Notes under the pieces: generated by a model | What the model saw: the letters and a program-made list of their open reading frames with translations, nothing else | The model's database searches: none | Told to the model about the DNA's origin: nothing | Program-made: the position numbers and the translations under genes | Shown: positions 15,020 through 53,400 of the stretch, piece by piece | How the letters are laid out: the number at the start of each line of letters is the position of its first letter | Position numbering within the stretch: position 1 is the first letter of the stretch | Assembly: GCA_030704615.1 (NCBI GenBank) | Contig: CM060731.1 | Coordinates: 66,402,001 to 66,466,000 of the forward strand | Source of the DNA: Takakia lepidozioides | Lineage: Eukaryota > Plantae > Bryophyta | Length of the DNA stretch: 64,000 nucleotides | Reading direction: 5' to 3'

Positions 15020-15099
15020 TAAACCATCAATAAGGGAGGGACGGAGGGATGGGTGTAAAATGTGGACGGAGGATTTCTCCGAAAATTTTGGAGGTGGTA

Positions 15100-15295
15100 G
15101 GGGGCCATAGTTGGCTAACTTTCTAAACGTATGACGCCTCCCCCAGGAAGCGTAACTTATGGAGTCACTTCACCCCTGAAGGGCTATGCCTTCCGCTAGG
15201 AAGGTGGACACCTTCATGACACACCAGACCATGGTTTGAACCCACAACCACATCCAACCTGGTATGTGCCCCTTACCACTGGGCTACATGCTGGT
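15100..15295 (-). mobile_element. tRNA-derived SINE (Pol III A and B boxes)
   Basis: Minus strand A box TAGCCCAGTGG (15276-15286) and B box GGTTCAAACC (15233-15242) with tRNA-like spacing but no acceptor-stem closure; 3' end approximate. Confidence 0.6.
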
Positions 15296-17166: not shown

Positions 17167-18407
17167 ATGGCTTACAAGATTGTCAGTGAAGAAGAATCGT
17201 TAAAGAGATATGTCATGCATGCAAGTGAGAGGTGTGTTCAAGATTTACTTTCTGCGTCAAGACCAGAGCTGCAAGATGGGTGGAGATTTCTCAAGATTAG
17301 GCGCGGTGTAGAGATATCTCGGAAAAAGCAGGGCCTGGTGAAGATTGTACGAGGGCGCTGCTTCCTTGATATGTCTCTTTCTGAGTTTCAGGCACTTGTC
17401 AACGCGGTTGACACCGCCAAGGTTTGCGCTTTCCCACAAATCCCAAATACAGGGCTTAAACTATGAGGTAGAGGAGATCACGATTGTCTTTGTGATGGCG
17501 TCTAAAATACTGGCTTGCAATCAGCTGAATTCAAACTGTGAAATCCACGCAAATGTGTACATAGATGTATTCGAGTTTCGGTTTGGTAAAAGAGCAAGGC
17601 CTCACATGTTCCATGTGCAGAGGGGTGCAAAACGGTTTGTGTTCACGCTGAAGGCAGCATTCCTTACCACTGACCATGCTTCATCGATGTTCTGCAGCGA
17701 TGGGATCCGCACTTTGTTACAGGGCATTACCTAAGAACTGTCCAAGATAATCTGGACCTCTTTCGACTAGTGTTCAGTGGACGGGCAGGACCTCTATTCA
17801 GGAACCGAGAGTTCATCGTGTACGAAAGACGAGAAACCATGGACGACGGGACACAGGTTCGTATCATCAGGGCCTCTCCTCTCTTCGATTTTGATAAAGC
17901 TCCTCAGAAAACCTCCTGTGAACTCAGCCTGAATCCACAATATGGCCCTTGTGATTACTTAGGGGGGAAATGACAGATCAATCTTCTTTCAGCTCATTTC
18001 CGGTTATGGGTTTTCATGGCTCAGGTGGTTGCTGTGGCATCATTGCCCAAGGAGCTGGCATCAGGGATCTATCCTGAAGAAGGCAGGCTAGTCCGAGGAC
18101 TCATTGTGCAGTCAGGGTGGGTGATAGAGCAAGTTGACCAATCTGATTCTTGCTTGGTCACATACCTAGCACAGGTACTGCACTGCACACTGCTTTCTCT
18201 CAGAATGTCAGCTATATCAATGGACATTATTGTGTTCTTTTCTACTTTAACAATCTGACAATCTGAAAACCCTTGAAATGTGTGGTGCTGTTTGCCATGC
18301 AGGTTGATCCTGCTGGCTGGTTACCCAAGTGGTTGGTGAACATACTTAGTTCCAGGCTGGTCTTGGCGATTGATGACCTTTACAAGCTTGCTCAAAGTTT
18401 TCGATGA
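17167..18407 (+). CDS. Minimal START/SRPBCC lipid-binding domain protein (resembles Arabidopsis At5g49800 type)
   Basis: Exons 17167-17421, 17698-17856, 18025-18174, 18303-18407 (GT-AG). Motifs AVDTAK/RWD, PLFRNREFIVYERRETMDDGT, VVAVASLPKE, SGWVIE, VDPAGWLPKW. Confidence 0.9.
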
Positions 18408-18927
18408 TTGCTCCATCTCTTAGAGCTAAATTGGTCCTGCCACATTATGGTCTTGAACTCTGCATATGTATTTCCTAATTGTACATGCACATTGTAAACA
18501 TAGCTTTTGAAAAAATGTATACACCATACACATGTTATGGAGTCCCAGACTCTTGTTTGCAGATTTCAATTCTCAATTGCCAAACTCAACCCTCGTGCAC
18601 ACTGAAGAAACCACTGAATAGGCTGGCAGTTATATTTGATGAGAAAGATACAGGCTCCGTCCATATCAAATGTTCTTTCCAGCAGAAACAGCTTAAAATT
18701 TCCTCACACATTGCATGAGAAGTTCCTCCATCTAAGAGAGCATCTTCCTATATAGAAATATAAAACTTTCAGTGAAGACGAAACTTATGGAGATTCCTCT
18801 CCGTGCGGGCCTGATCTTTCTAAACATCATGATACAATTGTCTAAAATAATGGAGAACAAGGTATTCTCAGCGGAGAATGATAGCGCTGATTTTTCAGCT
18901 TATTGACGATTCTATGAAAGATGTTTT

Positions 18928-19660
18928 AGGCTCTAAATTTACATTTTTTAAGGGGGCCGTGCTTTCAGAGCCCACCAAAGGAAGGTGGAAGGGGAAGAGA
19001 CCCTCTAGCCCTCACCTTCTCTATATACTGTGGTGGTGGAGTCTTCTAGGAGCGCCCACCGCCTATGGAAAGCTCTAGAAGTAGAAGGAGGGCCCACCGG
19101 TCTCACATATCCTACTTCTATGCTGGCCTCTACACGGCCCCTCCCATATCACCATTCCCGCACCCCTTCCCTCCCCATTGGTCACCCCTTCCCTCCCCAT
19201 TGGTCAGTCCAATCCTCTCCTTTTTTTCGACCTTCAGGAATAGCCCCTGCCAGAATTTGGGACTCCTCCTTATTCATCCCAATCCCCAACAAGCTCCCCC
19301 TATCCCTATTGTCATTTCTATTCATTTGAAGATGGATTAGGTTCCAAATCTACATTTTCGAAGGGGGCCAAGCTTGTAAAGCCCACCAAATTGAGGTGGA
19401 GACAAAAAAAAACCCTGTAAAATGTAGCCCTTACCCTTTCTGAGGGCTTTGGGAAGCCTTCTAGAATGGGGCCATCCCCTCATCCCCATCCTCCTTTTGG
19501 AAAGCTCTAGAACTAGAAGGAGGGCCCACCTTCCTACTTCTATGCTAGCTTGTACTCCCGGCCTCAACACAGGTGCCCTCCCTCCCCATTGGCTGCTCCA
19601 ATCCTCTTTCTTTTTCTGACCTTTGGGAATAGCCCCTGCCAATGTCTGAAACAGGGCTCA
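18928..19660 (+). mobile_element. Two adjacent diverged copies of the Tourist-like MITE
   Basis: Shared blocks GG.TC.AAAT.TACATTTT..AAGGGGGCC, GAAAGCTCTAGAA.TAGAAGGAGGGCCCACC, GGAATAGCCCCTGCCA at about 18928-19265 and 19340-19660. Confidence 0.7.
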
Positions 19661-26900: not shown

Positions 26901-29900
26901 CAGTAGCTCTAGTGCATAGAGAAGATACTAAAAGGTAGCTGACCTGCCTTTCAATCAAGTTGTCTTCATTGCGGCGTACAGCCAGCTGTGCCATGCAGCA
27001 AAATAGGATGGCTTCACAGGATGGCTTCACAGGATGGCAAGATGAGTGCATTTTATTGTTCATGACTGGACTCACTTAAGAGAATGTACTAATAAGATGT
27101 TTGCCACAGCTCTGTGGCCAATGAGAGAGAGGAAGACGAGGGAGAGCAAAGCAGCAAGGTACCATAGGGTAGGAGCTTGACAAAGGTCAAAACAAGAGAG
27201 ATGGCCTACCACTGCTGGAATGTCAAGACCACGGGCAGCCACGTCGGTGCAAAGAAGGATGCCCTTTTCGGCATTGCAGAATTCAAAGTAGGTTGAGGTT
27301 CGCTTTTGCTGCTTCTGTTTCCCATGGATGTCGAGGCAGGGGATGTCAATGTAGTTGAGCATCTCACTGTGGAATTTGACTGAGTTACATGATGAAAAGA
27401 ACACCATTATCTGTTAACGATCCAGGCCAATATCCAATTAGTGGTATCTCTTACTACCAATTCACTTATATGACGTGACGCACATTCGGGCCATTAGTAG
27501 TACAATTCCACAGTGGAAGTAACTTTATACCATATTCATAGGGTATTGTCTGAAACCTCTCGACCTGCCCTACAAACTCAACTTGTGTTTGGGACCAAAT
27601 AGAGGGAAGCTAAATCTCACAAAAGGGCATCATTGTCTTCACTAGCCTTCAGGACATCCATCGCAGTTCCGAGTCAATTTGTCACCTTACTAGCCGGGAA
27701 GAGAAAGGCTCTAACGCCAAAATGCTCCAAAATGTTGCAGTATGAAACTGCCATACAGTAGTAGTCCATGGCAAGGTCAGTACGTTAGGCTTACACAACC
27801 CACCTTCTTCTTTAGGTTCTTTTTCAAGAAAGTGAACAGGAGGAGAAAGCGTTGTGTGCTCGACACCACACAATAGCCTTGCTCCAAGCCTTCCACTGTG
27901 GCCTGCCCTCCACAACAGACCCCAATGATAAATGTACAGAGAAAGATACCAAGCGAGAGAGCAAGAGCTATAGCCACCTACATGCCACCTTAATTGTACA
28001 ATTCATATGCTTTCTGGCATAACTCAATACCAGCCATTGAATTAGCTACCATGCAACCCTGTAGCCAGATTTTCATTGGATCACTTTCATAGCCTGGGGA
28101 GTCAAAAACCAGACATGCTACAGCAGGAGTAGTATGCTGCATAGTGTGCCCCTTAAAGGGGATGCCACAGTCAATTCCTGTGCAAAGAATGGAAGCCAAT
28201 GCAAAGTCTTATATCTTCTAACCTTCGCAAACGTAAAATGAGGTTAGTTCGATGACTGCAAAATTTAAGGCAATCTAACATTGCGAGAACTAGATTAGAT
28301 GCGACTTACTTTACATATATCAAGAGTAGGCAATAATACACTACCTTGGATCTGCCATCGTCAACACCAATGTATAAGGGTGCACTTTTGAAGGACACGC
28401 GTGCCAGATCCTCAACCTGCATCAATTCAATCGTATATCAATATTTATTGGACTCAACACGACTTGCACGTAGACCAGTCATGCTATTATTAAGGAAAGG
28501 ATCTGTTCCATCCTCGACAGACACATGGCTTTACAAATTGGTGATGGAGGCAAATTCCTATCGAGTCCTGCAAAATCTATAATTAAACTTCAAGAAAAGG
28601 ATGTCACCTCCCTGTTTCTCACACTGATTCAAGTAAAAAGATGTACCTTTGTGGTCTGTGTAGCAGAGAAAAGCACAGTTTGTCGCTCCTGCATTGTAGT
28701 CAAACTTGTCTCAGACCCTCTGTGTATGCTAAAGAAAGAATGTAAGTTCTCTTAGTGGTTAGGCCACTTAGTATCTTTGAGCTCAAGATCTGGAACCAAC
28801 CAGACAGATTAAACCAGCCATAAATTATCAGAAGTCTTGGCTTGCGGCCTATGCCGGAGGCTCTGTGACCCATCCTTGAGCAGAGGCATCGCCTAGTCAA
28901 AGAAAGTACCTGGGGACTATACAGCTTATAGGGGAAAGGAACTATTTAAATGCACTGCTTGGGTTCAGTGTCATCGTTCTTTTATTGATGTTACAGGAGT
29001 TTCTGAAAGCAGTGCTGTATCTCAAGCCATCATTTGATGAGACTCTGAACGAAATCCTGTCAAAGGTTACTGTGCTGGAGTAAGAACCACTGAAGGTATG
29101 AAGACATGTCTTCCAACACAAGGTCATCTCATAGTAAAAGTTGAGGCAAGGTCACAAATTGATTGCCTTTGGAAGAAGCTTGATAATCTGTTTCATTTCC
29201 TCCTCAAACCCTATCTCCAAAATGCGGTCCGCTTCATCAATGACCAGACACTGTCCAACCCTAGTCAAAGAAAGTACCTGGGGACTATACAGCTTATAGG
29301 GGAAAGGAACTATTTAAATGCACTGCTTGGGTTCAGTGTCATCGTTCTGTTATTGATGTTACAGGAGTTTCTGAAAGCAGTGCTGTATCTCAAGCCATCA
29401 TTTGATGAGACTCTGAACGAAATCCTGTCAAAGGTTACTGTGCTGGAGTAAAAACCACTGAAGGTATGAAGACATGTCTCCCAACACAAGGTCATCTCAT
29501 AGTAAAAGTTAAGGCAAGGTCACAAATTGATTGCCTTTGGAAGAAGCTTGATAATCTGTTTCATTTCCTCCTCAAACCCTATCTCCAAAATGCGGTCCGC
29601 TTCATCAATGACCAGACACTGTCCAACCCCGACATACAAGCAGAAATCTGTCAGTACACTTTGGGCCAACGGATGCAAACACTGCTGGAATGGACTGCAT
29701 AAGGTAATGGCCTAGCAGTTAAAGAGACTCTCTCTCTCTCTCTCTCTCTGGCCACAAGGCTGCCCAACGTCTTATGAGTACATTCTCTCTCCAGCATCTC
29801 TTCAGCTGTGCTGAAACTGGGCATGAAGCCTATGGCTACAGGCCTCTGCCAAGTACAATTAGATCCTGCTTCAAAGACATCACCACAACTACCTCCATGA

Positions 29901-32916: not shown

Positions 32917-34461
32917 GGTTTAAGAGTATGGTGTCATACATTATTTGAAAAAATAATGACAAAACATATAAAAATTAAAACATGGATGTATTGCACTACA
33001 TTCATCCATTTTAAAATATCATCCATACATGTTATAGGCATGAACTTGCTACACATGTACCCTAACAATTGAGCATATGTATCCATGTGTGAATCGTAGT
33101 TGTAATACATTATTTATAGGCTTATATATATATTTATATTAGTACATACATAGTCATAACTCTATTGACGAATATTCATATTCATGAAGTACAAATAATA
33201 TGTCTAAGAATGTCGTTTAAAGTGGGTTCGTATTCTTGTGGATATCCAAATTTCATCTCATGTACTTACAAAAATCAATGATATATTTTGGTATATTAAG
33301 CTATGCACATATGCGAATAGTGGGTTTAGAAATTTCATTTAAGTGGACTAGTACTATAGGAGATCCCCATATTTACATCTCAAACATTAATCCATATCCA
33401 TATGCAAATATATGCAAAATATGATTGGGGAGTGTCATCTAAGTGGGCTAGTATTGTATTGCATGATGAATTTTGCCTTAGAAATGTCATTTAAGTAGGC
33501 CAGTATTACACTACATGTTGATATTTCATACATAATGTCAAAAGTGTACAACACATTTGCACACATTCAGCCATACACATATGTGGAAGTAGGCAAAAAT
33601 TGCCTTAGGAATCTCATCTAAGTGGGGTTAATGTTACATTGGATGTCAACATTCCATACATATAACAATATATGACATAGTTTAGTGGATGTTAAGTGTA
33701 CATCTATAAGTTCATAATGGATACACATTTGTGTAAGTGTATAGCTTATGTTGAATATACATTGTTGTAACAATGTGCAAGAATACATATATTACACAAT
33801 GTTTCATCACACAGTGTCTCCTCATAACTAAGTTAGAGATTATTTGAAAACAAAACAAAAGTGAATCTCGTAAAAAATGCATGAATATTTTATTTCATCG
33901 GCAAAGTATGGTCACAATTCCGATATGACACGATGATATCATCTTTTTCAACACGTGTATTTGTATAACACTCTATTTTGGTTTGACCGTGAGAGCATTA
34001 CATATGATGGGCGTTTAGCTTGCAGCCGAGCTTCGTGTCTATCACCATCTTCAGAGGGATTAATGAATGTCTCATTTGAAAAAATCGTCGTCATCCTCCA
34101 TATTCAGATCTTAAACCCTATACCCCTAAACCCCACATTCACCTACATGTATATTAAGCGGGACTCTATGATGTAAAGAACTTGTTAGTCCAAGTATGTT
34201 AAGTGAGAATGTAACTTTGAGATGATAATGTTTGACAAATGTGTCAAAGCAAATTGTGAATCGAAGTTCAAATGCATCAAGGTCAAGAAGAAGGCACAAA
34301 GACAAATGACGGTTCTCTTAGGGATGTATCAACTTCATGCCAATAATATGTATGAATGATATTTTAAAATAGATGAATGTAGTGCAATCCATCCATATTT
34401 TAATTTGTATATAATTTGTCATTATTTTTTCAAATAATATATGACACCACACTCTTAAACC
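32917..34461. mobile_element. AT-rich non-autonomous element with about 115-bp TIRs (MULE/foldback-like)
   Basis: 32917-33030 is an imperfect reverse complement of 34348-34461; TSD not resolved. Confidence 0.7.
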
Positions 34462-36057: not shown

Positions 36058-36738
36058 CTAATGCTCAATGACAGTAGCAAAAGGGAAAGTGTCAAGTGAG
36101 TAAAATTGTTGAGAAAACATACGGATAACCAAATCTAAATGCGAAGTAAGCCTATTGCGAAGCTTGGATTTCATAAAACTCAGTGTACTAAAAGTGCGTT
36201 CATCCTCCACATATCCGATCACCTGCACAACAACAATTTCCGCAAGTTTGATATACTCTGGAATTCTGTGTACCACAATCTGGCAAGCTGTCAACGTCCT
36301 CCATAACTTGTTTAGGGGATTCATATTGTGGGGGGAGCCATGGCAGCTATAGCATTGTTCTGCATTGTCAAAATGAAGGTCAACCGTTGCATATCAAGAG
36401 CCCCGGACTCGAGGAGAGGGACAATCCACTGTTCCGCTGCTCCCATCCTCTTAGGGCCACAATAAGCAGCCTTGATGGTGTTCAAATGAGTTGTGAAAGT
36501 CGCCTCAGGGTCGCCATTCAGCCAGTATTGGGGATATACTATCCCAAGAGCATCCATAAAAGCTTGAGCAGAAAGCGAGCTTCAAGCTCCTCAATCAGCC
36601 ACTGTGTTGCAAGCTTTCCTTGTGCCTTCACAAGAACAATGGCTCTATCATAGACATCTTGAGTGACATAACGACTTTCTCCAGTAATCGGATCTTGATG
36701 TTTGGCCCAGATATGTTTCCCATTGAAGTCAAACCCTA
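36058..36738 (-). pseudogene. hAT (ZNF862-like) transposase, C-terminal part with dimerisation domain
   Basis: GFDFNGKHIWAKH, MDALGIVYPQYW, KLAEIVVVQVIG.VEDERTFSTLSFMKSKLRNRL; frameshifted. Confidence 0.85.
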
Positions 36739-37588
36739 GGGTACATGCACGCTAAGGTGGACCAAAAATGGCGGATGATGTCTCCATGGAAGTCCATCCA
36801 AGTTTGAAAAAATTGGGCCCCATCAGATGTGGCGCGGCGCCATTGGCCGTGATAATAAAAAATAAAATTCAAAATGAAGGCTGAAAATGGCGGGATCACC
36901 GGTTGGAAACCGCCGATCGGCGGTTTTAGCCAATCTTGTCGAAACGAGTGGCCCACATGACCGGAGCCACCGGCTTCCTCTCCTTCCGTTCTCCCGCCTA
37001 CTATGTGTGCGTTCTCCCGCCTCGAGCTCCTGTGCAGGGCTGTTCGTGCATCTGACTCGCACACTTCTAAGTGTACTGGCGTGCTCTGTGTGAAGGCAGG
37101 GTGATAGTAGGGATAGTAGTCAGTGTGCTTTTCCTTACTAGAGTACAGACGTGCAAGTTGCAGGATGTCATTGCCGCATCATGGTATACTTTATGTGAAG
37201 ATTACAAGGGAAAGTTTTGATAATGTCTACAACTTGCTCCATTTTGAGTGGTCTGTCTGGTGAGAAAGCAGTGAGGAAACGAGTAAAGGTAGAAGCGGGG
37301 ATTAAGGTGCAGTCGATTTATATTGCTCCCCCTGTGCACGGAACATCACCTGAGCTCATTTTTTATGGCAAGACTCTTGTCAATCGTGACATGTTTGCAA
37401 AGAAATACAATCTTTGCAATGAAGGTGTACCTCCCAGGGGTTTAAAGATAGATAGAGATTGCACAGAGGTTGAAGTTGCTGAGCTCTTTGGGCCTTTACT
37501 AAACAAAAACGGCTACAGTTACTTACACGATCCAGGAAACATTGAGCTCATAACTAGGGTGGAAGAAATATGGATGATAGCGCATCAA

Positions 37589-39459
37589 GAGCGTTGCCAC
37601 GGCGTGAGCCTAGCCGCGCCCAAGAGCTCGGCTCACGCTGGCTAAGCGTGAGCCCAGGGTTTAGAGGAGGGAGAAACAAGTCCTATAACCGAGGATAGGG
37701 TTTAGAGGGGGTCCTATTACCGTGGAAGCGTATATTTTGGAAGAAGAGGTTAACACGGCAAAACTTCCAAACACGGCAAACACGACATATTGAGTCCCCT
37801 TTAGAAGCACGACGATCGACCCAATTCCCCTCAGCCCTAGTTTGTACCTTCTCCAGTATTTCTGGGATTTGGTGGGCTGGTACTACCATCATTTTAAACT
37901 CCCATCCCAAGCACTTCACGCAGCTGGTCCCACCCTCCACCAGCCCCAAGCACTCCACCTTGAAGACAAGCCCCAAGCCGCGATCCCACCTGGCCCCACT
38001 CTCACCAAGCCCCAACCTTTTGTGGTCACTGTTCCTATAAGTATACTCCTGCAGCAGCCACACCCACTAGTGAGTTGCTTTTCAACCCACCGACAATAGT
38101 AGAACTATCTAGAAAGTAGAACTATCTAGAAAGTCATCAGTGAACTAGGGGAGATGGCTATACCAACTTTGGCCTGCGAGTAGCGGGTTTAACGGGTTCG
38201 GGACCTAGCTGGCGGGTCCAGGTCCGGTTTTAAAATGAACCTGGGTCAGGGTCCGAGTTTTTGGTGATGGCGCGGATCCGGATCCGGATAGCTAACTCGG
38301 ATCCTAACCATGGTTTTTTTAGGGATTTTGACAACGGGTAGGAGTGGCTATATATATTGGGTGTAGGGTAGTGGCCCACTCTAGGTAATTTTCCTCGAAT
38401 TGGGAGGCTACATGTATTTCCACCCTTGCCATATTTTGCGAATCAAATGGATGTTGATGAGCAATAGAAGGTGAAGTACAGAAATAGTTGAAAGCCGTAT
38501 AGTTCTCGCAAAACTGGCGACGAGCATCTCCTTGATAAACGGAGGAGGCCCCACAATCCTAAACCCACTCCTCATCTGGCCCGTCAGATCATCCTACATG
38601 AGGCCCACCATGGCTACATATGTACTGCTCCCGTGGGTCCACAGACGATGACCTTTTTGAGACCCCCAATTTTTGGCAAAAATTGCCTTATTTGGACCTC
38701 TTTTTCCCTATGTTTCATTCGCCAAGGGGAGGCGGGCAAATGGCGAAAAATCGCCAATAAAAAAAACACTGACCCTAACCCGTCGGATACCCGGGGTGAA
38801 AATCCGGACCCGCACAACACTGTCGTCGATGTCGTCAATAATCATCCTAAAATCATGATCATGACAAAATTGAGTGTGTTGACGCACTCAGTTCTCGGGG
38901 GGGTGGGGAAGTTTTTTTTTTCCCCCCCAAAACCCGTCGGGTTACCCGGGTGAAAATCAGGACCCGCACCTGTCGTCGATGATCATCCTGAAATCATGAT
39001 CATGAAGAAATTGAGTGCGTTGACGCACTCAGTTCTCCCCGGGGGGGGGGGGGATTAGAAAATTAAATAAAAAATCTCATCCGCCTAATGCCCGCTTAAT
39101 TCCCAGCCATGTTTCCTTCCACGAACATGGCAGTTCGCTAAGGGTTAGGGTTAGGGTTTGAGGTTCCGATTTGCAGTTTTTTTCCTAGTTTGCCGTGTTT
39201 GCCATGTTTTTGCGGTAATGACGTCAGCTTAATTCCTTCACAAACATGGAGTACGCTAAGGGTTAGGGTTAGGGTTTGCCGTGTTTGCCGATTTGCCGTT
39301 TTGTTGTGTTTGTCGTGTTTCCGCAGTAATGGGTGCTCATCCGTTGAATTACACCCTGCATCTTCCCCATTCTCGTGCCACGTGGACTGGCCTCACGTCA
39401 GGCCCTTGGGCTCACAGGCTCTTGGGCTCGCGTGGCTAGGCTCACACTCTAGCGTCCCC
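37589..39459. mobile_element. Non-autonomous Mutator-like element
   Basis: 9-bp TSD GCGCATCAA (37580-37588, 39460-39468); G...C termini; imperfect TIR GTGAGCCTAGCC...CCCAAGAGC; inverted AACACGGCAAA/TTTGCCGTGTT blocks; internal about 155-bp tandem repeat 38780-39040. Confidence 0.75.
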
Positions 39460-39789
39460 GCGCATCAAAAGCATGTCGTCCCTGCTTCTCACCTTGTGAT
39501 CAAAGCCATTGCTCGCGGGATTGTATGTGAGAGGAAGAAGAGAAAGGTTAACTGGGCAGTTTTTGCAGAGTTCACGAATAGAGAGGCACTTCGACGAATC
39601 CAAAGCCAGGACGTTGTAGGAGTTGGAGACCTTAAGCGAGGTTTGTCTTTGGTTGAATCCGAGGAGGAAACATACATAGAGGTGGAGCGCGAGTTTTTGC
39701 CGCAATCAGACCTCCCTATCGGAACAAAGGAAAAATCGAGAAGGTCAGCTGGCTCGCAATCGGACGTGCCTCCAAAAATGAATCTGTTT

Positions 39790-39960
39790 GTGAGAGCCAC
39801 CACGAACACCCGCGACTCCCGGTGATGAGTCGCGGTGAGTCTTGGCCCACCCACCACGGCCCCTATGGACCGTGAGGAGTCCCAAGACTCCCCACGACTC
39901 CCACCACGAGGTCTCCGCCCCAGGGTGAGTCCTATGCCACCCCCACTAAGTCCCGCTAGG
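39790..39960 (+). mobile_element. Truncated LTR 5' end
   Basis: Starts TGTGAG; reverse-complement match to 52893-53055. Confidence 0.75.
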
Positions 39961-42900
39961 GAGTCACTTGATGAAGTTGAAAAAAGAGAAGGCTGAACAA
40001 GATGTGTTCAGAGTGAACTCTCAAATGCAAGATCGCAGAGAGTTGCTTTTAAGTGCAAACGTCAAGCTAGACATGCTGCGAACGCAATATGACAACGAGA
40101 CTCTAAAGTTGAACGAGTATTTGTCTGTTGATAGCGAGCCGCAAGCAGAAGAGGTGAGCTCCTGTCGCGAGTTGTTGGAAACCCTGCATCGCAAGCTTGA
40201 TTCTCACCAGGGTATTGTGGACCACTTTAAAGATCTGATGGAGGAGAGGGAATCGGAGCATAAATCTACCTTGGAGAAGGCTAAGTTGGATGAAGAGGCA
40301 TGGTGTGTAGCCTCGGATCGGTATAAAGTCTGTCAGAGGCAGAAAGCTGCTATTGCTCAACAGCTTAATGCGATGGAACATGGCCACGATAGGCCATCAT
40401 TCAAACCTTCCCCAATGTGTAACCTTTCTGTTGAATCTCCTGAATTCAACTCCCTAGAATTTCTAACCATTTCACCATGTGCTTTCTGTGGTAAGGGGTT
40501 TAAGCCAACATGGGATTGTTTGGTGGTTTCATGCACTCATGCCTACCATTCTTGGTGTGCATTAGCACACTTTTCGTCCTCAACAACCTGTTTGCAGAGA
40601 CATTGCGGGCAAGAGATGCATGAGGACTGGTGGAGGAGTGTCGGCATCAAAAGGCCATCCTCTGATGCGGTGAAGGTTGTGGGAGATTGGCAAGGTGATC
40701 CTCCCAAGTCTCTTCCAGGTAATCACTGACCAGTCCATGGTATATCTTCGGCTCCATTTTATGCCACACTTATTCTTGATGCATTCCCTGTGTATCCTTA
40801 AAGACACCTTCACTCCATTGTGTTTCCTGGAATGCATCCTCATCTTCCATGTATTTGTTTCATTCTTCCTCCATAGACACTATGTTCCTTGTGGAGTCCT
40901 TGAAGCACCCTTAAATTCATTTTTTTTCCTGGACTGCACCTTCTTTATCCATGGTATTGTCTCATGCTTCCTCCATATTCACTGAGTCCATCTTAATCCA
41001 TGCCTAGGAAGTTTCACTTTTTTCCAAATAAGAGAGAAGCACCTAAAATCCAACACCAACTTTAACTTGCCCATGGGTCCCATTGAACTCAGAAAATTAT
41101 ATTGATGGGGAGGTGGATAGCCTGAACTAGCTGTCTATTTATGCGAGTTCTGAGTCTTCAATCCAGCAGCCCTGGTGTTCTTTGCTGCAGATACTCTTTC
41201 AGTCACAGGTACAATGTGTTTTCGCGATTTCTTTCTTGGGGAATGCCCATCATGGTTGTCATTTTCTCCACGTTTGGTAGCCTTTGTAATGACAGGTTGT
41301 GGGGACATGGCATCATCCTGAACTCGGGCATCCATTGTATCCACACCATGGTTGGGATCAGACTGGGAATACAGTTCAGTAGAGGTCAAATCATTGAAGG
41401 CTTCATCATTTTCCAGGATCAAGTGTTTCTTGGCCATCTTATGTTGGGGTTTACGAGGGGATTGAATGGGACGAACATGTGGTTTTGAAACTGTCTCAAT
41501 TCCTGCAGAATGTCAATTTTGCTGATGTGGCACAGCTTCCAGTTCATGTTCCAAAGCCTGGTAACTCAGTAGCTTGCAATTTGGAGATGTCACCTCATCC
41601 CCCCACAATCAGTAGATTTCTTCGCTGTGGCTACCATCCCAATGCTTGCAATAGATGGGCTGAGTATGGAGGCCGATCTTGGAGCTCCAATGCGGGGGCG
41701 TATCTGAGTAATATCCCGATTACCAGAAAATGAAACTGAAGTGCGTGTTGGGTCTGCTCCCAACCCACAGTAAAACTAGCAACGGTGTCAATAATGGGAC
41801 TGTACAAGACATGTTAGTGAACATCCGTGGAGTGGGAATGATGTACCCTAGAGGTCCATGGACTGCATTGTATGGTGTCATTGGCGGCTGAAGGGATCCA
41901 AGATAACCCTGAAAAGGCCCACCTAGACCATGAAAAATGCTTGCACAACACAAGCAAGCAACAAAGGGTCACAATACATCCTACCAGTCATTAATGGGAG
42001 TCGACTCTGCCACTTGAGCTCAAGCCTCTTTTGTTCTTTTTGTGATCTGCTCTTGGAGGACCGGAGCAGACTTGTGGTGTAGATTTTAGAGCTTCTTGTC
42101 CTTGTCTGTATGTGTGCAATGGCTGGGGTTTCATTAGTGTTTAGTTTCTGCAGTTCTAGTATGTTGTATCATGCCCTAGTATCAATTGGTTTATTTTAGT
42201 TCATGTAAGCTTGTCCAGATGTTGGACTCTGTACTTACATTAATACTCTATCGCTGGCTCGTTCAGCCTCCCACATACATAAGGATTCTTCTCCCCACGT
42301 CTTAGACAAATCCGATGCATTTTATTTTTTTCAAAGAAAGAGGGAGCTTAGCTTTTTGATACAATTTCTCTGAGCAACATTTGGAGTCTTGTGCTGTATT
42401 CTGATTGTTACCCTACTTTGTCCCATGTTCCTTAGGGGCACCAGTGCACATTAGACATAGATTCCTTTGATGTGATGCTGATTTGTTGATCTGGGTTGCT
42501 GTATGTGTTGAAGAGGCTCTTTTGCACATTGCTGATTACCAGTTGAGAAAGAACTTGCTTTGCTTCACAATTTTAAGATCGATATTTATCCAAGCCTTTT
42601 CAGGCCTCCACTTTCTTGATTCCAGGTCCTTGTATACGGTGAAGTTAGTGAAAGATGATTATCTGCTATGGAGAGTGCATTTGGAAATGATGTCTTGTCA
42701 AGTAACCTTTTAGTCCATGTTAGGTAGTGAGCAATGAGACATGGATGTAAATTTCTATCTTGGCACACCATATCCTGGTCCTTTTGACATATAGTACAAC
42801 ATTACTCATTGGGTTCCTCCTTTGTTTGTGGCTGAACAGTCTGGCTGAGGTTTAAATAGTCTTGCACACTTCCTGGAACCTAGTCTTAATCCATCTCAGC

Positions 42901-42986
42901 TTACAGCAACTCTGAAACTTTCTAGAGGTTTGAATGGGTGTAGAGGAAGAGCCTCTTGACCAAATATACACTCAATGTCAACGTAC

Positions 42987-43668
42987 CTTAGCTTCTGAAG
43001 TTTGGTCCATCTTCATAAAGTGCAGAAGAAACTGGGTGGTGGGGCCATTAATGATAAGTGTCAAAAAAGCTACATCCCCTGTGAAAAACACACACTAATG
43101 CATTTGGTCCAAGCAACAGCTTTAGAAGGAAAATCTTAGAGCCTCCCCCAATAATTACCACATTCTGAAACTTGATACCTATTACAACTTGTCGTTTAGT
43201 CATGTCTGGCCAACAGCACCAACCATGTGGTAAATGGTAGTGGGCACCGAAGAATGATACACCTTAAAAAAATGAGACAACAGAGTGACCACAAGTGATG
43301 TACCCGGGCTTCAGTGAGCTTTGAGATGTGAGTGTATTCAAGGGAATCTCTCACCCCAACTTGCTGCCAATGTCCCCATAATAATCAGCTTTCTAGTTCT
43401 AACCTTTCTCAACAAACAAAAGCTGATAATGCAGGACTCAATATGTATGAAGGCTATGAAGCCGCAATCAAACACTATGGAGTGTTACACAAATCACAGC
43501 CACTGTCAAAATGTGGTCACGAAGTCCATAGACTACTTACACCATCAGATAAGGAAAGAGAGAGCAACAGCTCCTCGCAGGCCAGCCCATATCAGCATAG
43601 CAGCCTCTTTCCATGTGAGGCCATAGCCAAAGAACTGCAAACCTTCATAGAGAACTCCCACCAAGTGC
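42987..43668 (-). pseudogene. SOS1: Captured three-exon genomic fragment of a SOS1/NHX7-type Na+/H+ antiporter
   Basis: 43541-43668 LVGVLYEGLQFFGYGLTWKEAAMLIWAGLRGAVALSLSLS; 43304-43363 QVGVRDSLEYTHISKLTEAR; 42987-43094 CVFFTGDVAFLTLIINGPTTQFLLHFMKMDQTSEAK; GT-AG introns retained. Confidence 0.88.
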
Positions 43669-44780
43669 AAGCCAAAGGGCTAGTTAAATTGAGAAGCTCC
43701 ATGGTTGGCCAAAAGTGTATGAGGGATGACTTTCTGGAGGATGCTGATATCTGCAAAGCAAAGAAGATCCATGTTGTGTATGAGAAAGGGGAGCACCCAC
43801 GCCAATCTCTTCTCCAACCAGACTTAGGTGACTGCTCCTCAAATTCAATTCTGGATTTGTCTGAAATCAGATCTGTATCCTGCCTCAAAGTCCCCTTGGT
43901 TTCTTGCTTTCCAGATAAGATTTTGCCAAACACACAACCTCAGGCTCAGTTTAGTTCATTGCATTCGTGCCATTGAATCTGGTGAGTACTACTGACCAGT
44001 TGAAACAGATGGGTACAACAATAGAGCCATGACCATACAATTCCAATTCTACTTCCAGGGCCAACTCTCACAATTGCATTTGAGGGAGCAGACTGAAAAA
44101 GCAGGGTGGAGGCAGCTTTTTAGTCTCCTGAAACCCCTTCCCCATAGGTGGGCACCGTGATGTATCATTTCCTAGTCCCCTGCACTAGTATTTGGAACCC
44201 CAGACCCCCGTGCTACTGCCCCCCAGCCCTGTTATGCCCACCTGTCATCATCACCCAGATCCATTTTAATACAGATATCTTGTGAGGAATGTTCCATCTG
44301 AAAATGGTAACCAGATTAAACCAACCTTGAGCAGAAACCAAATGTTAACAAACATCATTAACTGAAAGGGGGGGCCAGCTGCACATACAGATGGTCCAGC
44401 AAATCTGCCTCAAATATCAAATTTCATCACGGGTCCCCACGTTCTTGCTGCCTTTGAAAGATAAATGTTCCTATTTCAGCCTCCTCTCCCCAATATCTTG
44501 TCCCTCTTGCCTTGCAGTAAAGCCAAAAACTACAGCAACCAAATTCCATAGAGCAGAAACTTGCCTCCTTCAAGAAAGTGAAACACAGCTGCATGCCATG
44601 CAAGAAAACACATCTAGGCAAGTGGGGCTGACCCAAGTGGGGCTTGAACCCACTATCATGCCCAACCACTTCTGGCATGCATGTGGGTAATGTGCAGGGC
44701 AAACTGCAAGTTTCATGGCCTACTGCTCACATAGGCCATGGAACTTGCCCCCCCTTTTTGGTTCAAGGTTAGGTGGTCAC

Positions 44781-47700
44781 CTACTCCTCGCCACAATCTA
44801 GGGCAGCAATTGCTGCCCTGATTCCATCTTCAGCATAATGTGGCAGATTGTAGACTGGATCATTCCCAGCTACCCGATAAGTAGTTGGTAGCATGGGGAA
44901 CTTGATCGCACGCACAGATTCTGCATGTAAAACGACCACACGGGATTTGCGGAGGAGAATGTAGGTGTTGTCTCCTGTCCCCCACTTTTGATAGTACTTC
45001 CCAGTAACTACCATGTCACTTTCAATGAACCTTGTGCCCCATGTGTCAGTAAATCCCTTCGTCACTGTGTGAAGAGGTCGGACACAACAGATGATGTAGA
45101 AGTCTACGTCTTCGTCGTTGTCTTCCTCTGCATTAACAGCAAAATTATCACCGATCTCAATGCATCCGGCAAGGTAATCACCATTGACTCCAAAGTCATC
45201 CCATTCCTCATTTGCTGCTTCTTCCATGGCCTTCCGTACATATCGTGTGTTCTTAGGGTTCAGGAATTCCAGCTCCCAGTCACCAGTCCATGAAATGTTC
45301 ACACAATCCATTGTGAGTCAATGCAGAAGCAGCAAAAGCATGCCATCATCTTTTTCATCAATTTGTTAGCATCCCCACTACTTACAGATCTGACCGAATG
45401 CAATTGTTGTGTGCCCTTTACAGGGTCGCAGTCGTACTGCGCATGACGCTTTATATCACCAACTTTCACCTCCCAAAATACCCGCTTCACCTCTTGTTTC
45501 TGCCTTGTGTAAGAAGTCTCTGGCCTTGAAGACAGACGCTCTCTCAAGAATTTCACCACATCCTCTGCTGTTTGCAGCTTGGCACCTGAGACATCCAATT
45601 GCGCACTACCGAGAAACCTCTTAATGACCGCACCTGCACCATCATGAGGGCCCTTCCCGTGCCCTGTACCAAAGAATGACCAAAGTAGAACGCATCCTCC
45701 TGTCAGATAAGGGTATCTACTTACAAAGTACCAAGGGACTTTGCTCTTAAATTGGGCAGAGCACCCATCACTCCAAATCTAGTGTTGTCTTGGTCAAAAC
45801 AAAGTAGCGGTCACGTGCTGCCAATGGAGCTGGAGACAGTGCTGAACAAAATAACTGTCATGTGTTTTATCATCTGAAATGAAGAAATGATATTCCATCA
45901 AGGTTTCTGAGCCAGGATCATGCAGGTCTGGGTTAGGGTTTTGACGCCATGTGATGAGGACCATTATCGTGATTTGATAAGAATACCAATGCATGCTCTG
46001 CACCTCATTCTGCACTTCAAAACTGTAGTTTTCAGCGAAGTCCACCACTGAAACTAACACATCGGCAGGGAAATTCATGAGGCACTCTTTAAATTGTTTG
46101 TCCTCCCAGCGTGCTACGAAATTATGACGGACAAAGTATTTGAGTTTAGGCTTCGAATACCGAATCAACTCATGAGGTGGTGTCCTCTTATAGAGAAGAG
46201 ACAACTTCTTTCTCTCCTGACCTGTTTTTGTTGTGATAGTTTGCATTGAAAAATGCTTCCACTCCACGAGAAGGTCTGTAGATTCATCCTCCTCAACAGG
46301 GCAAATGGCAAGGTTATCCACACCACAGTTCTCACATTCACCATACATGCAATCTCGCTTGTGCCATAGTGAATATTGATCCTTTGGGCACACCACTCTT
46401 TCCCACATATCAGTAACACGGCTACAGGTTGCTAGAGCACCCACACATGCATCTACCTCATCTGGACGGCATATGTCTTCGCATTCACAATCACAACCAG
46501 CAGTAGAATGGATACATGCCTTTGTCCGCATGTTATTGAACCCACTCTAAGTTCTTCCATCTCCACGTGGTAAATACAAGCACACACATTACGCTCTTTC
46601 ATCCTCTTCACATAGAACGGTTTTAGACGGTCAAAAGCTCGCTTCCCAATGATGTTGTTAGGATGCGCTCTCTGGAATCTGAGGAAAAAGTCCATCTACA
46701 CAGCCACTTCACTTATGAGAACATTGAGGGAAATTTACTACAATCAGTATGTACTTCACAAGAATCCCCATCAATTGCCTTAGTCTATGCATGTCCAGAA
46801 ACATCCATGCTGGATAGCCATAAGTACTTGTAGTATCTGATTGTTTCCATGACAAATCCAGTGACCTCCACATATACTCCTTCAACTCCACATACATCCC
46901 TAACAACTCCATAGAAGGTGCCCTCAAGTGGAGTCATGGACAACTAGTCCAGTAATAGTCCATATTGTTCAGTAGTATCTTACAGTGAAGTCCATAGAGT
47001 CCCCATGGCCTCCACTACATTCCAAAAAACATCCATGAGTCCACATTGATAAGTAGTAACTTGTAATGAAGTCCAAAGTTCCTCATGGACTTCACTGTAC
47101 AATCCAGAATACATCATTGACACCAAGGAACTTCATAGAGGCTGCCACAGACATCCAAAGCAAGGGGCATGGTCCACAAGTCTATTCATGGCAAGGAAAC
47201 CTGCTCCATTCCACAAAACTCAAAGAATCCTAGTTATGAAATTACCAAAAGAAAATTAAGGGAGTAGATACATACCTGAGGCTCCATCAAGTAGTGGGTA
47301 GGCTTCACATCATAAACAAATGCTTCCAACCGCTTCCTCGTGACATCCTTTCTATTGGGACTGATCCGAGTTTGAGTCGCCCACCAGGAAAGCACCAAAT
47401 CTTTTGTGGCATCTGAAATATTATTGTCAGTCCTCCTCTTTCTTAAAGACAAAGTCCATAGAATTTGGCCAGTGGAATCCATAAGCTTACGGCGCTCCAT
47501 TGCCAGACTAACATTCCGATGATGGATACCCAAAACCTGAGCCTTAGATCGAAATGAAGTTCTACCACCCCCACTTACCACTGCATTTAGAAGTGCATGC
47601 TTGCTGGCCAAATTAGATGCTGAATTTGCCAGTTTCATCTCAGACAGAGACTTTATCAACCCATCAATGACCTCTTGTTGTGCCTCAACAATCTTAGGAT

Positions 47701-48106
47701 CCTGAACATAATCTGGCAACATATGAGAGATTAAAGGGTGTGAAAGGACCTTCTCCAAGACAAGTTTCTTACTAGCAGGTCCAGGGAAGATTGTCAAAGT
47801 TTTGGAAATGCACTCGGCAATGTCTCGGGCAGCCCTTCTAACCTCCCTTTCGAGCACAACTTCCTCCACATTATGATCACCACCGGCCAAGTCACTGCGA
47901 TTAGGGTTAGTCTCAACTGTCAGCTGTGATTGTTTGCGGGCCTTGTAGTTAGCTTGATTGCGCCGCTTCCTGTCACTGAAGGAGCGTAATCTCTCCAATT
48001 GCAGTGCATGTTCTTTGGCCCTGCCTTTGGGCCCACGTCTGTAAACCCTAGTTGGCTGCAATGTTGCTCGACATTGGGGAGCCATAAGCAACCCAAAATC
48101 GCTGAA
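44781..48106 (-). pseudogene. Sola(2)-type DDD transposase, spliced and degenerate
   Basis: Exons about 47276-48106 and 44781-46696. Cys-rich CACIYH and CMYGECENC; VVDFAENY, HDSYFVQH, WSDGCSAQFKS, FFGTGHGKGPHDGAGA; C-terminal CFCCFC; in-frame TAG near 45780 and frameshifts. Confidence 0.8.
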
Positions 48107-48513
48107 CCTGCACGTGAAGCACATACACAACATTAGGGCAATTCATCGTAAAAGAGGAAAGAACGCACGAATACGCAGAACCTATACAATACTAGTCTCC
48201 CAAATCCCAACTCCTAATGCTCGGTCTGGGCCTTATGCTCGTCTCTGGAATATCGGGCCAGTAGCCGCACTGGCCACAACATGTGAGTGCTTCCGTCAAC
48301 CATGTGTGGAAATATCCATGTTGTTCTCTTGACTAAAAAGCCTGCAATCAAACAACTTCATCACATTAGAAGAGGTTTGAACTCATCGTGGCATGAGAAA
48401 CAAGAAGATTTCTATGATAGAATCCAAGCCAAAAAAACAAGTCGACAGCACCTGCACTCCATGAAGAGGACCCTCTTGGAGAATCCACCAGCCACCTAGG
48501 TGTAAGTACGTTC

Positions 48514-48830
48514 TTAGGTCTCTCCTTCACCCCTCCTCACACACAATGTCCAATCGTCAAATGTGGAGGACATCATCTCTATAAAGAAAGGCAAAATTTT
48601 CATTCCCCATGGATGTATGGCTTCTGGAACCTTGTACAAAAGCAAATCGCCATCTTGGGGCCCATCAATGCAGAACCATGGAAGGGGCTCTACTACAAAC
48701 TGTGGCTTTGGCCGGAAAGGCGCATTTGAAGCATTCCCACACATACTCAAGTCTGACAACTCAAAGCATATCACTTCAAGCTCTATGTCATCGGCACTGA
48801 AATAGTCGTCATGGCTTTCGTGAATCAACA
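48514..48830 (-). other. Unidentified coding-like exon upstream of the transposase inside the Sola element
   Basis: Protein-like ORF (DDIELEVICFEL...WFCIDGPQDGDLLLYKVPEAIHPWG) with splice-like boundaries; family not recognised. Confidence 0.4.
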
Positions 48831-49578
48831 TAACGCAGAAACTCACCCAAACTATCTTTCCTTGTATACGATTCACACTGGAAGCTAGACGATGCAAGCA
48901 CGAGGTGAGAGAGACAGCATGTGAGAGACAACAGCACGACGATGTGCGTTTCATCTCCCGCTCAAAAACTAGGAATATTTCTGAAAATTAATTAAAATTA
49001 TTGAATTTGAAGAAACCGACACGTCACCTGATATGGGAGTATGGACCAATCGGATTTTTGACTCGGATTTGTCCATTTCTTAACGAGCCATTGTAGAGAA
49101 TTGTTTCTTACACCCTTTTAGTAAAGAAAAGCACCCCAAAACATTAAAATAGAATACACTATGGACTTTTCAAAAAATCGCTCTTTTTGGGACATATATT
49201 AGTCCATATGGCACAAATGACAACTGATATTGTTATTCTAAATTGAAATCTAGAATGTTCTCTAAATTGGCCCCCTTACCTTAGAATTTCAAAGCAATAC
49301 ACCAAAGGCACATGCCCATATGCCGAGTCCACGTATTTCCATTTGCAGCGGTAACAGTCCATAGTGGTCGTGTTCAAAAGTCCATAGCTCTTCGAAATTT
49401 TATTGGATTGACAATTGGACAGCTGATATAGGTAGATATTGAAGTTAGGAATCTAGCATGGAAACGTTTTATCAACATTATTGAGTGCACTCAAAGCAAT
49501 TCATGATATCATGCATGACAGTCACTAAAAATTGTGCCGGTAACGCAGTTTTTGGTCCACCTTAGCGTGCATCTACCC

Positions 49579-50390
49579 CCTAAGTGATCGATTACAATAT
49601 TCAAGTCAGTCATCCACTTGAGAACAATAACATTATCTCGAGTTTCAAGCAATGTGTTAAACTGGGTGAAAATATCACCAGTGAATGCGGTTGTTGCATC
49701 CACATACATCCTATGCACATCAGCCTTACATATCTTCACGGCAGCCACGAAATCGCAGACGAACACTTCTGTGAGTTGTGCGAACTTGACCAGAGAATGT
49801 ACACACTCCAGCAATGGCACAAAGCAGCAAAGGGACAACATAACCTCAACATCACATAGCAGCTCAAGGTTTTTAAAAGCAACTACCTCGTTGCGTGAAT
49901 CATCATACATCTTCATAAGCGGAGGCCTGTACTCGGCCAGCACCCTCTTTGCTGGGCTAAGCATTGAAATCCATCGAGTTTTGACGTTGCGTAGAATTTT
50001 GTTACCTTTTGTTTCCATGATCTCAACTAATTTGCAGAGTTTAACATGTCTCTTTGGGGATTTGCAAAATTATCCATACAAACCTTGCAAGAGCATCTCT
50101 AGCCTGTGCACGGCAACTATATCTGACAAGGCCTGAACTGCAAGATTTGTGCGATGCAAGATTTGAAGACTTTTGGATCTGCACTGTCATTCCGTTTTAC
50201 ATGCCCTGAAATGTAGCAACCCCGTCAGCTCCAAATGATACAAGTCTGGTAGGGCTATCAGCACTGCTCACACCACCCCCGATGTGTAGAGCGTTCATAA
50301 CAACATGAGTTAGGTTGCCTGCATTGCTGCCATCAACAACACGCTCCACTCTTACGCCTACGCATGAGAAAGAAATGAGGCGGTGGTGCA
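49579..50390 (-). pseudogene. hAT transposase, central catalytic part (continues into 36738)
   Basis: RLVSFGADGVATFQG, HRTNLAVQAL, KILRNVKTRWISMLSPAKRV, LKWMTDLN.VIDHL. Confidence 0.85.
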
Positions 50391-50409
50391 TTGCCTTGAG
50401 CTTTGGCGC

Positions 50410-53400
50410 CACTATGTTGGTGACGTATTTTGCCACGCAACCTAAGTTGTCGCCAAAACAACTTAGGTGACAAGACATTTTGGTAGTGTTCGACGTGGAT
50501 ATCTAATACAAACCGGGACGGGACAATGTGGTGGCCGATGCTTTAAGTAAAAAGCAGCAGCTCATGTTGGTGTACAGGGGCGAGACGACGCTCCAAAGGA
50601 ACATCCGGAAGGCTTATCGAAAGGATGAGATGGCGAAGTCCGTGATGCAGGACTTGAGAATGGGGGTTAAATCGCAGTTCCACTTGCACAATTGGCTGCT
50701 CAGGTACAAACAAAAGTGCCTCTACGTGCCGAAGGGAGGGATCAAGGATAGTCTCTTGAGAGAATGCAATGATGGCCCGTTTGCGGGCCACGGCGGAGCC
50801 AAACACACCGCGACACTCTTGAAAAAAGAGTATTTCAGGCCCAAACTGAGGGAGGAGGCCGATGAGTATGTCAAGACATGCACCTCATGCCAACAAAACC
50901 GGAGCGAGTACAAAAAGCAAGCGGGGCTGTTACAACCCTTGTCGATTCCAGAAGGGTCTTGGGAAAGTGTCTCGATGGATTTCATGATTGCTATGCCGCT
51001 GTCAAAAGGATTCGATGCAATCATGGTGGTGGTGGATAGGTTCAGTAAAATGGGTCATTTCATCCCCACCAAGGAGACGGCAATGGCGTAGGAGATGGGG
51101 CGACTTTATTTCGCCCATGTCTTCAAGAATCATGGACTCCCGAAGGATATTGTCTCGGACCACGATCCAAAGTTTACAAGTAAATTTTGGAGGGCGCTTT
51201 GGAAGAAATGGGGACGAGGCTCAAGATGAGCACCGCCTTCTGACCTACGACGGACGGCCAAATGGAAAGAGTGAATTCCGTGGTGAAGCAGATCTTGCGG
51301 AATTATGTGTCGGCAGACCAATCAGACTGGGTGGAGCACTTGGATGCGACAGAGTTCTGTTATAATAACACAAAACACTCCGCAACGGGAGTTTCCCCTT
51401 TCGTATTGGTCTATGGAAAAGCACCTTTGGTGCCGACAAGTTGGGCCGCCCAGGACGTTGAGGAACCGACAGCAGCAACGGCGCTGAAAGAACGCGAGCG
51501 TTTGTTGAAGCTTGCAAAGTACAACATTGCCAAAGCTAGGAAACGGTATGAACGGCAGACAAATCAGAAGCGGAGGGAAGTTAAGTTTGAGGCAGGCACG
51601 GAGGTCTGGTTGAACATTAAGAATTTTCAAAGATGAAGCGCGTTCGAATCGGCATCAAGTGTTGCGTCCGCCACCTGTGCTGTTGGATCATGAAAATGAA
51701 CCTGCGTACGAGGTGGAGGCAGTGCTTAAGTCGAGGAGGTTCAAAAATCGAGAAACGGAGTATCTCGTGAAATGGAAGGGCTATCATCAAGTGGAGGCAA
51801 CTTGGGTGCGTGCCTCAAAAATGGGAAACGCATCCGAGGCTGTTGCAGCTCTCGAAGGGCAACCTCAAAAGCGGAAGAAGCATTGATGGGGACATCAACC
51901 CTGGATCGTGGGGGAGGAAATGCATGCTTAGCCCGGCTTAGCTAGCTCAGGAATTCGATTGCAAAAACTTGTGTTGTACAAATTTTGTTATAAATGAAAT
52001 GGTTTCCAAATGTTGTGCATCCTATTTTGTTTGGAATGGTGATGCATGGTATGGTTGGCTAGTGTGTAGAATGCATGCTAGCTTACAAAAGTGGGAGAGG
52101 TAAATTGGATTAATCGTGTGTTTGCGTAGTGCCGAAATCGGGTGACTCCCATCCAAGGGGCAAGGAAACTTGGGCCTTCTTTGGGAGTTCACGTGCTAGT
52201 GCGCACCTGGTGCGTGCGCGTACTATAACTGCGCTACCGAGGGGGTTGTCTTGTAGTGCGGATTAACGCGGAAGCTACGTGATTCCGTTCACGTACAATT
52301 GTAGTGATTGGGACGCACGGTTGGTTCAAGGTTATCTTCCTAGTCAAAAAAAGGTTCAAGGTGATGCCAAAAGCGACATCATGAGCGATCGCAAGCAATG
52401 TTGTTGCAGTAAGGCGATTCGATCCTCAGGGAGGATCGTCCCTTGGCCTTGAAGTGGACCAAGAAGAGTGCACTGGGTGGAGCTTGAGAGGCTCCACCCT
52501 TAGCCGAGACTTGGAGGAAGTCGGCCGAACTAGGTGGAGAGTAGAGTCAAGTGGGGGTTTGGTTCTCTGCCATGGGACGCCATGGTATGGAAACAAACTC
52601 CTTGATGTGGGACGCCACAACTTGGATGTTAGTTTCTACAAAATGGACAAGTCGATGAGGACATCGATTCCCTGTTGGTAGGGGTGTGTGTCGAGGCCCT
52701 TTGCCTTGAGGGCAGGGGGGTCGGGACACAAGAGAGGCTGCCCCTATGGTGGGGGCAATGGCAACAATAGGTACGGGGGCTGAAGCACCCTTGAGTGCCC
52801 AAGGCACTCAAGGAGGTGGAGGCGCTCACTAGGTAGAGCCCCGCACACCGGGTTGCGGTGGGGGTGGTTCCACGAGGGGTGGTGGTAGCTTAGTGGGACT
52901 TAGTGGGGGTGGCATAGGACTCACCATGGGGCAGAGACCTTGTGGTAGGAGTCGTGGGGAGTCTTGGGACTCATCACGGTCCAATGGGGCCGTGGTGGGT
53001 GGGCCAAGACTCACCGCGACTCATCACCGGGAGTCGAGGGTCTTCGTGGCGGTTCGTCATAAAATGGCAGGGTTGTTTGTGAAACCCCCGCGGACAGTCA
53101 CAGAAGTATATATAGGGAGTAGTAACCCCGAGAACGGTGCAAGCCCGTTGGTGACCAAAAACTAGTGAGTGAGCGAGCGAGCCGGAAAGCGACCAAGGAG
53201 TGGGGAGCTATTCCAGACTGCCATCCACCAAAGGGAATTTCTACTAGGCCCAAATTGGTGGAGGGTCTTTTGGAGGAGCAAAGGGGGACCGTTATGCCCC
53301 GGTGAGCAGCCGAAGCTCCGAGTTGGCCCGGCGGCCAATTTGGGAGTTAGGCGCGTGCATCAAAGCGAGTAACTATGACTTGAAGGGGAGCTTACCGAAG

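Follow-up and report, generated by a model that had tools for sequence, protein, structure and literature searches.

A two-gene element inserted in a hAT transposase gene

The stretch analysed here is a 64-kb window of the Takakia lepidozioides genome, and coordinates given without a locus name are positions in this window. A DNA transposon of 12,840 bp, or ~10.8 kb without its nested inserts, occupies positions 36739-49578 and interrupts a hAT transposase gene (Table 1). It carries two genes arranged tail to tail, a transposase gene with Sola2 features and an accessory gene encoding a coiled-coil/RING protein, and the DNA between their 3′ ends is variable.

The element is bounded by 30-bp terminal inverted repeats (TIRs) that are identical at 29 of 30 positions and by a 4-bp target-site duplication (TSD), CCTA, on both sides. 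In silico excision produces a single open hAT frame, IDHLGFDFNGKHIW, of at least 70 codons, and this restored frame fixes CCTA as the TSD. The left flank gives a weak Pfam match to the hAT dimerisation domain (E 0.006), while the right flank contains a TRW motif. A scan of the whole window for G(A/G)G TIRs combined with 4-bp TSDs ranked 36739-49578 first. Public short-read contigs, compared over 36500-42499 and hence informative for the left junction only, include one that crosses this junction at single-copy depth with 0 differences; the underlying run is possibly the assembly’s own sample. In the same data a second hAT copy, 7% different, stops precisely at 36738, and contig depth near 36782 indicates ~ten sequences related to the left end. 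The TIRs with a single mismatch, the CCTA duplication and the rejoined hAT gene had all been described in a first-pass annotation made from the sequence, which also proposed comparison with an uninterrupted hAT copy; each of these claims held.

A degenerate transposase with Sola2 motifs

The transposase gene comprises an N-terminal and a catalytic exon separated by a putative intron, at which homology to the related locus L002 also breaks. Database searches used single pieces; pieces joined with X at stops served to establish the frame, the alignment, the profile scores and the tree. Sola TIRs begin with GRG, a rule to which the GGG start of the window element conforms. The DDD motifs named in the first-pass annotation (DFAEN, SDGC and HGKGPHDG) were located with their triad codons at 46042 (DFAENY), 45769 (SDGC) and 45643 (HGKGPHDG), at spacings of 91 and 42. 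The gene is a pseudogene, which the first-pass annotation had not noted, with stops at 45796 and 45781 and frameshifts near 46545 and 45310.

Compared by eye, the motifs of the window transposase (DFAENY / SD..HDSYFV.HC / WSDG..QFKS / HGKG..D) agree with those published for Sola2_DFa-2 and Sola2_PPa-1 (DFKEN / NHCS / WSDGAKHFKS or WCDN / HGKS..D; PMC3627910, supplement 3), and the TIR of Sola2 DFa-2 begins with GAG (PMC3627910). Pfam detected no transposase domain, as expected for Sola (PMC5751038). Homology searches yielded 2330 relatives at E ≤0.001, the named ones coming from Ceratodon, Calypogeia and Klebsormidium. In a tree composed only of homologues from this search, with no Repbase Sola1/2/3 references, the window transposase falls in a 100/99 clade with a Calypogeia locus, two Ceratodon loci, a Klebsormidium protein and metagenome loci. 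These relationships point to a seed-free land plant as the probable host. Motifs, TSD and termini support the Sola2 assignment given at first pass. A 146-codon open reading frame (ORF) lies 5′ of the transposase; a homologue search with it returned none.

A convergent coiled-coil/RING gene

The plus strand holds three ORF pieces, at 37217, 39469 and 39959, that belong to one interrupted gene for a protein with an N-domain, a coiled coil and a RING-H2 finger. The convergent coiled-coil-RING gene of the first-pass annotation is therefore present, as a single gene in three pieces. Its finger matches zf-RING_2 in Pfam with E 0.017, below the curated cut-off, and alignment places all eight zinc ligands in C3H2C3 order. 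A word-indexed search with the window RING piece found no match, and the protein family was reached instead through the homologue in L002, an element whose transposase is 40% identical to that of the window and whose accessory gene occupies the same tail-to-tail position. Searching with this homologue identified ~20 proteins of common design, in which a ~110-residue N-domain (FGPK..GWKY, VNWA.F) is combined with a long coiled coil and a C3H2C3 finger. Against the family profile, the C-terminal part of the window protein scores E 1e-14, and the N-domain, read across the insert, 32.3 bits, compared with 8.9 for the best of 2000 shuffles. A 486-codon stop-free read-through of the gene was rejected as ancestral sequence, as it relied on an arbitrary cut at a 161-bp repeat.

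The accessory gene accompanies Sola2 transposases in other elements

Loci L001, L002, L003/4, L005 and L022 were fetched through the transposase, and L006-21 through the accessory gene; L006-10, L021 and L003/4 were too short to test pairing. A convergent Sola2 transposase lies 3-7 kb downstream in four of the five testable loci fetched through the accessory gene (L011, L014-18, and L019 and L020 from Ceratodon purpureus assemblies). Among the loci fetched through the transposase, L002 has the pair and L005 retains a weak convergent coiled-coil/RING remnant. Altogether, the tail-to-tail pair recurs in five other elements, two from Ceratodon and three from metagenome contigs, in line with the multi-gene Sola lineage proposed at first pass. 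Across six elements, pairwise identities of the accessory gene and of the transposase correlate with rho 0.975, the top value of 720 label permutations. The two Ceratodon elements diverge from each other more than one of them does from a metagenome element. RING ligands are conserved though overall identity is 21-24%, and moss members carry a second RING (E 5e-7).

Because the gene has kept its tail-to-tail position and co-diverged with the transposase, we read it as a long-inherited accessory gene of the element rather than recent cargo. The cargo interpretation given at first pass needs revising in this respect. Several points weigh against the two-gene reading. The transposase of L022 has no accessory gene within 9.5 kb, and the accessory gene of L012/13 has no transposase. 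The accessory search started from a gene linked to Sola, the positives represent ~three related groups and not six independent cases, and host phylogeny can account for part of the co-divergence. In addition, TIR/TSD scans of the related loci found no TIR-plus-TSD pair in any relative; all candidates were weak, the best being a 22-bp A-rich pair in L011 without a TSD.

It is also conceivable, if doubtful, that the accessory gene travels with transposons of seed-free plants in general, hAT and other superfamilies included, and is not specific to Sola2. Such mobility would fit the lone copy in L012/13, the second, divergent family member upstream of the transposase in L002 (L002:4300-5640, present in addition to the pair) and L001, where only a distant, divergent coiled-coil/RING remnant was seen, 9 kb upstream; Fanzor1 behaves in this way (PMC3627910). 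Yet only Sola2 transposase was found beside the gene in the fetched loci, where no profile search for other superfamilies was made, and called genes gave only a weak DDE_3 match, outside the L011 unit.

Further features were recorded in these loci. In L002, an inverted motif of 15-16 bp lies close to the start of each gene (7961-7976 and 18255-18270). The two Ceratodon elements share a weak F-box-like ORF on the transposase strand (L019:15964-16497 and L020:14500-14970; Pfam E 0.049, L020 only). A 477-aa ORF lies 5′ of the accessory gene at L014:2820-4253 and has no clear Pfam family.

GTCCAY arrays and the predicted role of the accessory protein

The N-domain has a predicted fold with pLDDT 88 and leads into a basic helix. 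It has no match in Pfam, ESM Atlas or PDB (best Z 3.8), a blank that does not prove a new fold. With the whole accessory protein, ESM Atlas returned coiled-coil noise only. Rfam and phage records gave no matches. A PMD/DUF1985-like identity for the N-domain was discarded, being unsupported by Pfam, and PDB gave no fold. In the simplest reading, which we consider likely, the accessory protein is a RING-H2 ubiquitin ligase that contains a coiled coil and finds its target through the N-domain. The coiled coil would dimerise, the N-domain would direct the protein to its target and the RING would act as E3 ligase, a scheme that the second RING of moss members fits.

AGTCCAT occurs 16 times versus 2.3 expected (7-fold), with a shuffle maximum of 7. 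The density of GTCCAY is 11-13 per kb across the transposase intron and the right subterminal region against 1.0 per kb outside the element, and its core is present in both TIRs. Since the TIRs share this core, we favour the transposase as the reader of the motif, and GTCCAY is somewhat more probably than otherwise a transposase binding site. A different reading makes the accessory protein a VANC-like, sequence-specific DNA-binding anti-silencer that reads the GTCCAY arrays, with the RING as a scaffold. The motif clusters in non-coding tandem repeats do resemble VANC targets (PMC5735166), and the basic helix after the N-domain would suit DNA binding; the motif core in the TIRs points to the transposase instead, and no DNA-binding fold rose above noise (Z ≤3.8), so that we consider this reading rather improbable.

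As a ubiquitin ligase, the protein would most likely act against silencing by the host or regulate the amount of transposase. Our tentative suggestion, held at somewhat less than even confidence, is anti-silencing, on the model of VANC (PMC5735166) and of the accessory gene of an Ectocarpus Sola1 element (PMC12477816).

Nested insertions and recent duplication of the middle region

Inserts totalling ~2.0 kb confirm the ~2 kb of later nested insertion noted at first pass. The larger, of 1871 bp, is present at ~60-100 times single copy by summed contig depth; from the length of its TSD, we infer that it is MULE-like. The smaller is a 161-bp piece of an extremely abundant repeat (summed contig depth 300,000-560,000 vs ~40 for single copy), and it occupies a place where other copies have ~68-86 different bases. 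The idea that this piece is an intron was rejected, as RNA-like contigs retain 68 other bases there. Its match at 52891-53063 lies just beyond a Ty3-type retrotransposon remnant (50528-51886; integrase zinc finger and chromodomain), which itself adjoins the 5′ part of the hAT gene.

By contig depth, the 5′ part of the element is single copy (36900-37588), and 39460-42499 occurs ~2-3 times in nearly identical form, each copy with the MULE right end; the middle of the element was thus recently duplicated. Contigs from two runs of other studies cover 39417-42364, starting in the MULE end. That these runs are RNA is a guess, supported by the near-absence of high-copy repeats, and contig breaks in them fit a putative plus-strand GT-AG intron at 41209-41295. 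The simplest reading is a 5′-truncated accessory transcript that starts in the MULE end; contigs alone prove neither its start, strand nor level.

A SOS1/NHX7 fragment between the two genes

The gap between the two genes contains a decayed, three-exon, two-intron fragment of a gene for the salt transporter SOS1/NHX7, which matches solved SOS1 chains collinearly (phmmer, E 5e-10 and 1e-8). A host-gene fragment captured as DNA is therefore present between the TIRs, as the exons retain their GT-AG introns. The piece is known from the window copy only. Twenty other frames, most of them by far in the middle region, had no Pfam match that was convincing. Of the “host-gene fragments” first reported, SOS1/NHX7 alone was confirmed.

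The Sola2 element itself may have been the agent of capture. Alternatively, the fragment could have been placed in an already dead element by a Helitron, a nested element or break repair and never have moved with Sola, a scenario we regard as the less probable one while giving it appreciable weight. In its favour, the fragment was seen in one copy only, and the element has taken two other insertions; the read-contig comparison of copy number extended to 42499, short of the SOS1 piece. Against it, no convincing inner TIR/TSD pair surrounds the piece, and the adjoining 39460-42499, with its ~2-3 copies, shows that the middle was recently duplicated.

In a Pack-type reading, named after the “Pack” label given at first pass, all passengers, including the RING gene, would be recent host captures by a gene-shuffling Sola. 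In favour are the intron-bearing SOS1 fragment, the middle 4 kb, which has nothing in common with the middles of relatives, and a weak RsfS/Iojap-like piece in the Ceratodon element L020 (L020:13329-13670; E 0.019), a possible capture. The observed/expected CpG ratio is also 0.10-0.24 in the middle versus 0.63-0.74 at the accessory gene and ends, with low values elsewhere in the window too. However, even in distant elements the RING gene stands in the same position and orientation and has diverged in step with the transposase, which largely refutes recent capture of this gene, and its homologues include no named host gene. The main passenger is hence an old, co-inherited gene, and the element has a transposase gene, which Pack-TYPE elements lack (PMC8903248). 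We consider the Pack reading highly improbable and drop the label. Habitual mobilisation of host DNA by the lineage, as suggested at first pass, has in its favour one firm fragment in one copy and one weak fragment in a Ceratodon relative.

Table 1 Features of the element and its insertion site (window positions)
Feature	Position	Strand	Remarks
Target hAT transposase, 3′ part	36058-36738	-	Frame runs across empty site; Dimer_Tnp_hAT E 0.006
Left TSD (CCTA)	36735-36738
Left TIR	36739-36768	+	30 bp, begins GGG
Accessory gene piece 1	37217-37588	+	First half of N-domain; start codon uncertain; single copy in reads
Nested MULE-like non-autonomous element	37589-39459		Degenerate TIRs; 9-bp TSD at 37580-88 and 39460-68
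RNA-like contig coverage	39417-42364	+ (inferred)	Begins in MULE end; two runs from other studies
Accessory gene piece 2	39469-39797	+	VNWAxFA half of N-domain, then linker
High-copy repeat piece	39798-39958		161 bp, 92% like 52891-53063; no TSD
Accessory gene piece 3	39959-40729	+	Coiled coil and RING-H2-like finger (C-x2-C, C-x-H-x2-H-x2-C, C-x4-C)
SOS1/NHX7 fragment, decayed	42987-43664	-	Exons ~43664-43541, 43363-43304, 43094-42987; GT-AG introns
Sola2 transposase catalytic exon	44781-46695	-	Triad D codons at 46042, 45769 and 45643; broken by two stops and two frameshifts
Transposase intron (putative)	46696-47275	-	Tandem repeats and GTCCAY cluster; L002 breaks at same place
Sola2 transposase N-terminal exon	47276-48107	-	Matches L001 and L002 by tblastn (E 1e-15 to 1e-17)
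ORF 5′ of transposase	48514-48954	-	146 codons; may be 5′ exon or chance
Right subterminal region	48961-49548		GTCCAY 12.9 per kb
Right TIR	49549-49578	-	Matches left TIR 29/30
Right TSD (CCTA)	49579-49582
Target hAT transposase, 5′ part	49583-50478	-	TRW motif

Other repeats in the window

A 1.5-kb element at 32924-34454 has GAG ends, a TTAA TSD and 137-bp TIRs, which would fit a non-autonomous Sola3-like element. A ~4.9-kb unit at 14709-19641 is probably another TIR element; its inverted repeats are long and degenerate, and direct repeats lie inside it. A 368-bp tandem duplication, 99% identical, lies at 28892-29731.

Discussion

In our assessment, the window element quite probably belongs to a two-gene lineage of Sola2 cut-and-paste transposons from seed-free plants, of which it is a decayed copy. 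As extrapolated from Sola biology, its DDD transposase would cut at the TIRs and insert with a 4-bp stagger. Host DNA may be taken up between the two genes, where the sequence is unconstrained, when excision gaps are repaired, and may then travel along. The window copy is dead, though it could be mobilised in trans. A more ambitious version, in which an old streptophyte Sola2 lineage owns a ubiquitin ligase with a novel targeting domain that disarms silencing and routinely spreads intron-bearing host pieces, strikes us as unlikely.

The Sola2 superfamily subgroup was reportedly described by Bao et al. in 2009. Sola is known from a moss (Physcomitrella), and its elements can exceed 15 kb, with a usual Sola2 size of 2-9 kb (PMC10741241). 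The window element shares with this subgroup the DDD motifs, 4-bp TSD, short TIRs and G(A/G)G ends (PMC10741241), and differs in its fixed convergent second gene, its 10.8 kb without nested inserts and a TSD that is GC-richer than the AWWT of amoebozoan Sola2. Similar in design are the Sola2-Fanzor1 elements DFa-1/2/3 and PPa-1/4/5, which also combine Sola2 with a second gene at 10-15 kb and a 4-bp TSD (PMC3627910); their passenger is a TnpB-like nuclease in amoebae, in contrast to the N-domain/coiled-coil/RING protein found here in a plant. Sola1-1_Ec32 of the brown alga Ectocarpus is likewise large and carries an opposite-strand accessory gene, proposed to act on the element’s own epigenetic state (PMC12477816), but it is a 21.5-kb Sola1 with a ParB-methyltransferase accessory. 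As these elements are published, neither the “giant” size nor the presence of extra genes is new for Sola, contrary to the first-pass annotation.

Pack-MULE, Pack-CACTA and other Pack-TYPE elements (PMC8903248) similarly hold intron-bearing host fragments between TIRs. Their definition makes them non-autonomous, and they do not include Sola, whereas the window element has a full though broken transposase gene and one firm fragment. VANDAL elements with VANC (PMC5735166) resemble it in that they encode an accessory gene themselves and have arrays of short motifs in non-coding repeats; they belong to the MULE superfamily, and the parallel is analogy only, without a sequence or fold link to VANC. 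The gene-capture papers PMC8903248 and PMC13317346 do not mention Sola, and the literature covered, mostly non-subscription papers and exclusive of Repbase, contains no report of a RING gene paired with Sola2 or of a plant Sola capturing host genes. The element therefore seems to represent a two-gene branch, so far undescribed, of the known Sola2 family.

Our findings add a conserved two-gene design to Sola2 and define a protein family whose Ceratodon members (e.g. KC19_1G149000) are currently listed as hypothetical genes of the host. They also suggest that Sola elements of seed-free plants can harbour pieces of host genes, a point of importance for the annotation of these genomes. If the predicted activity is true, a transposon-encoded E3 ligase would represent a testable counter-silencing route unlike that of VANC, for which Ceratodon and Physcomitrium offer tractable systems.

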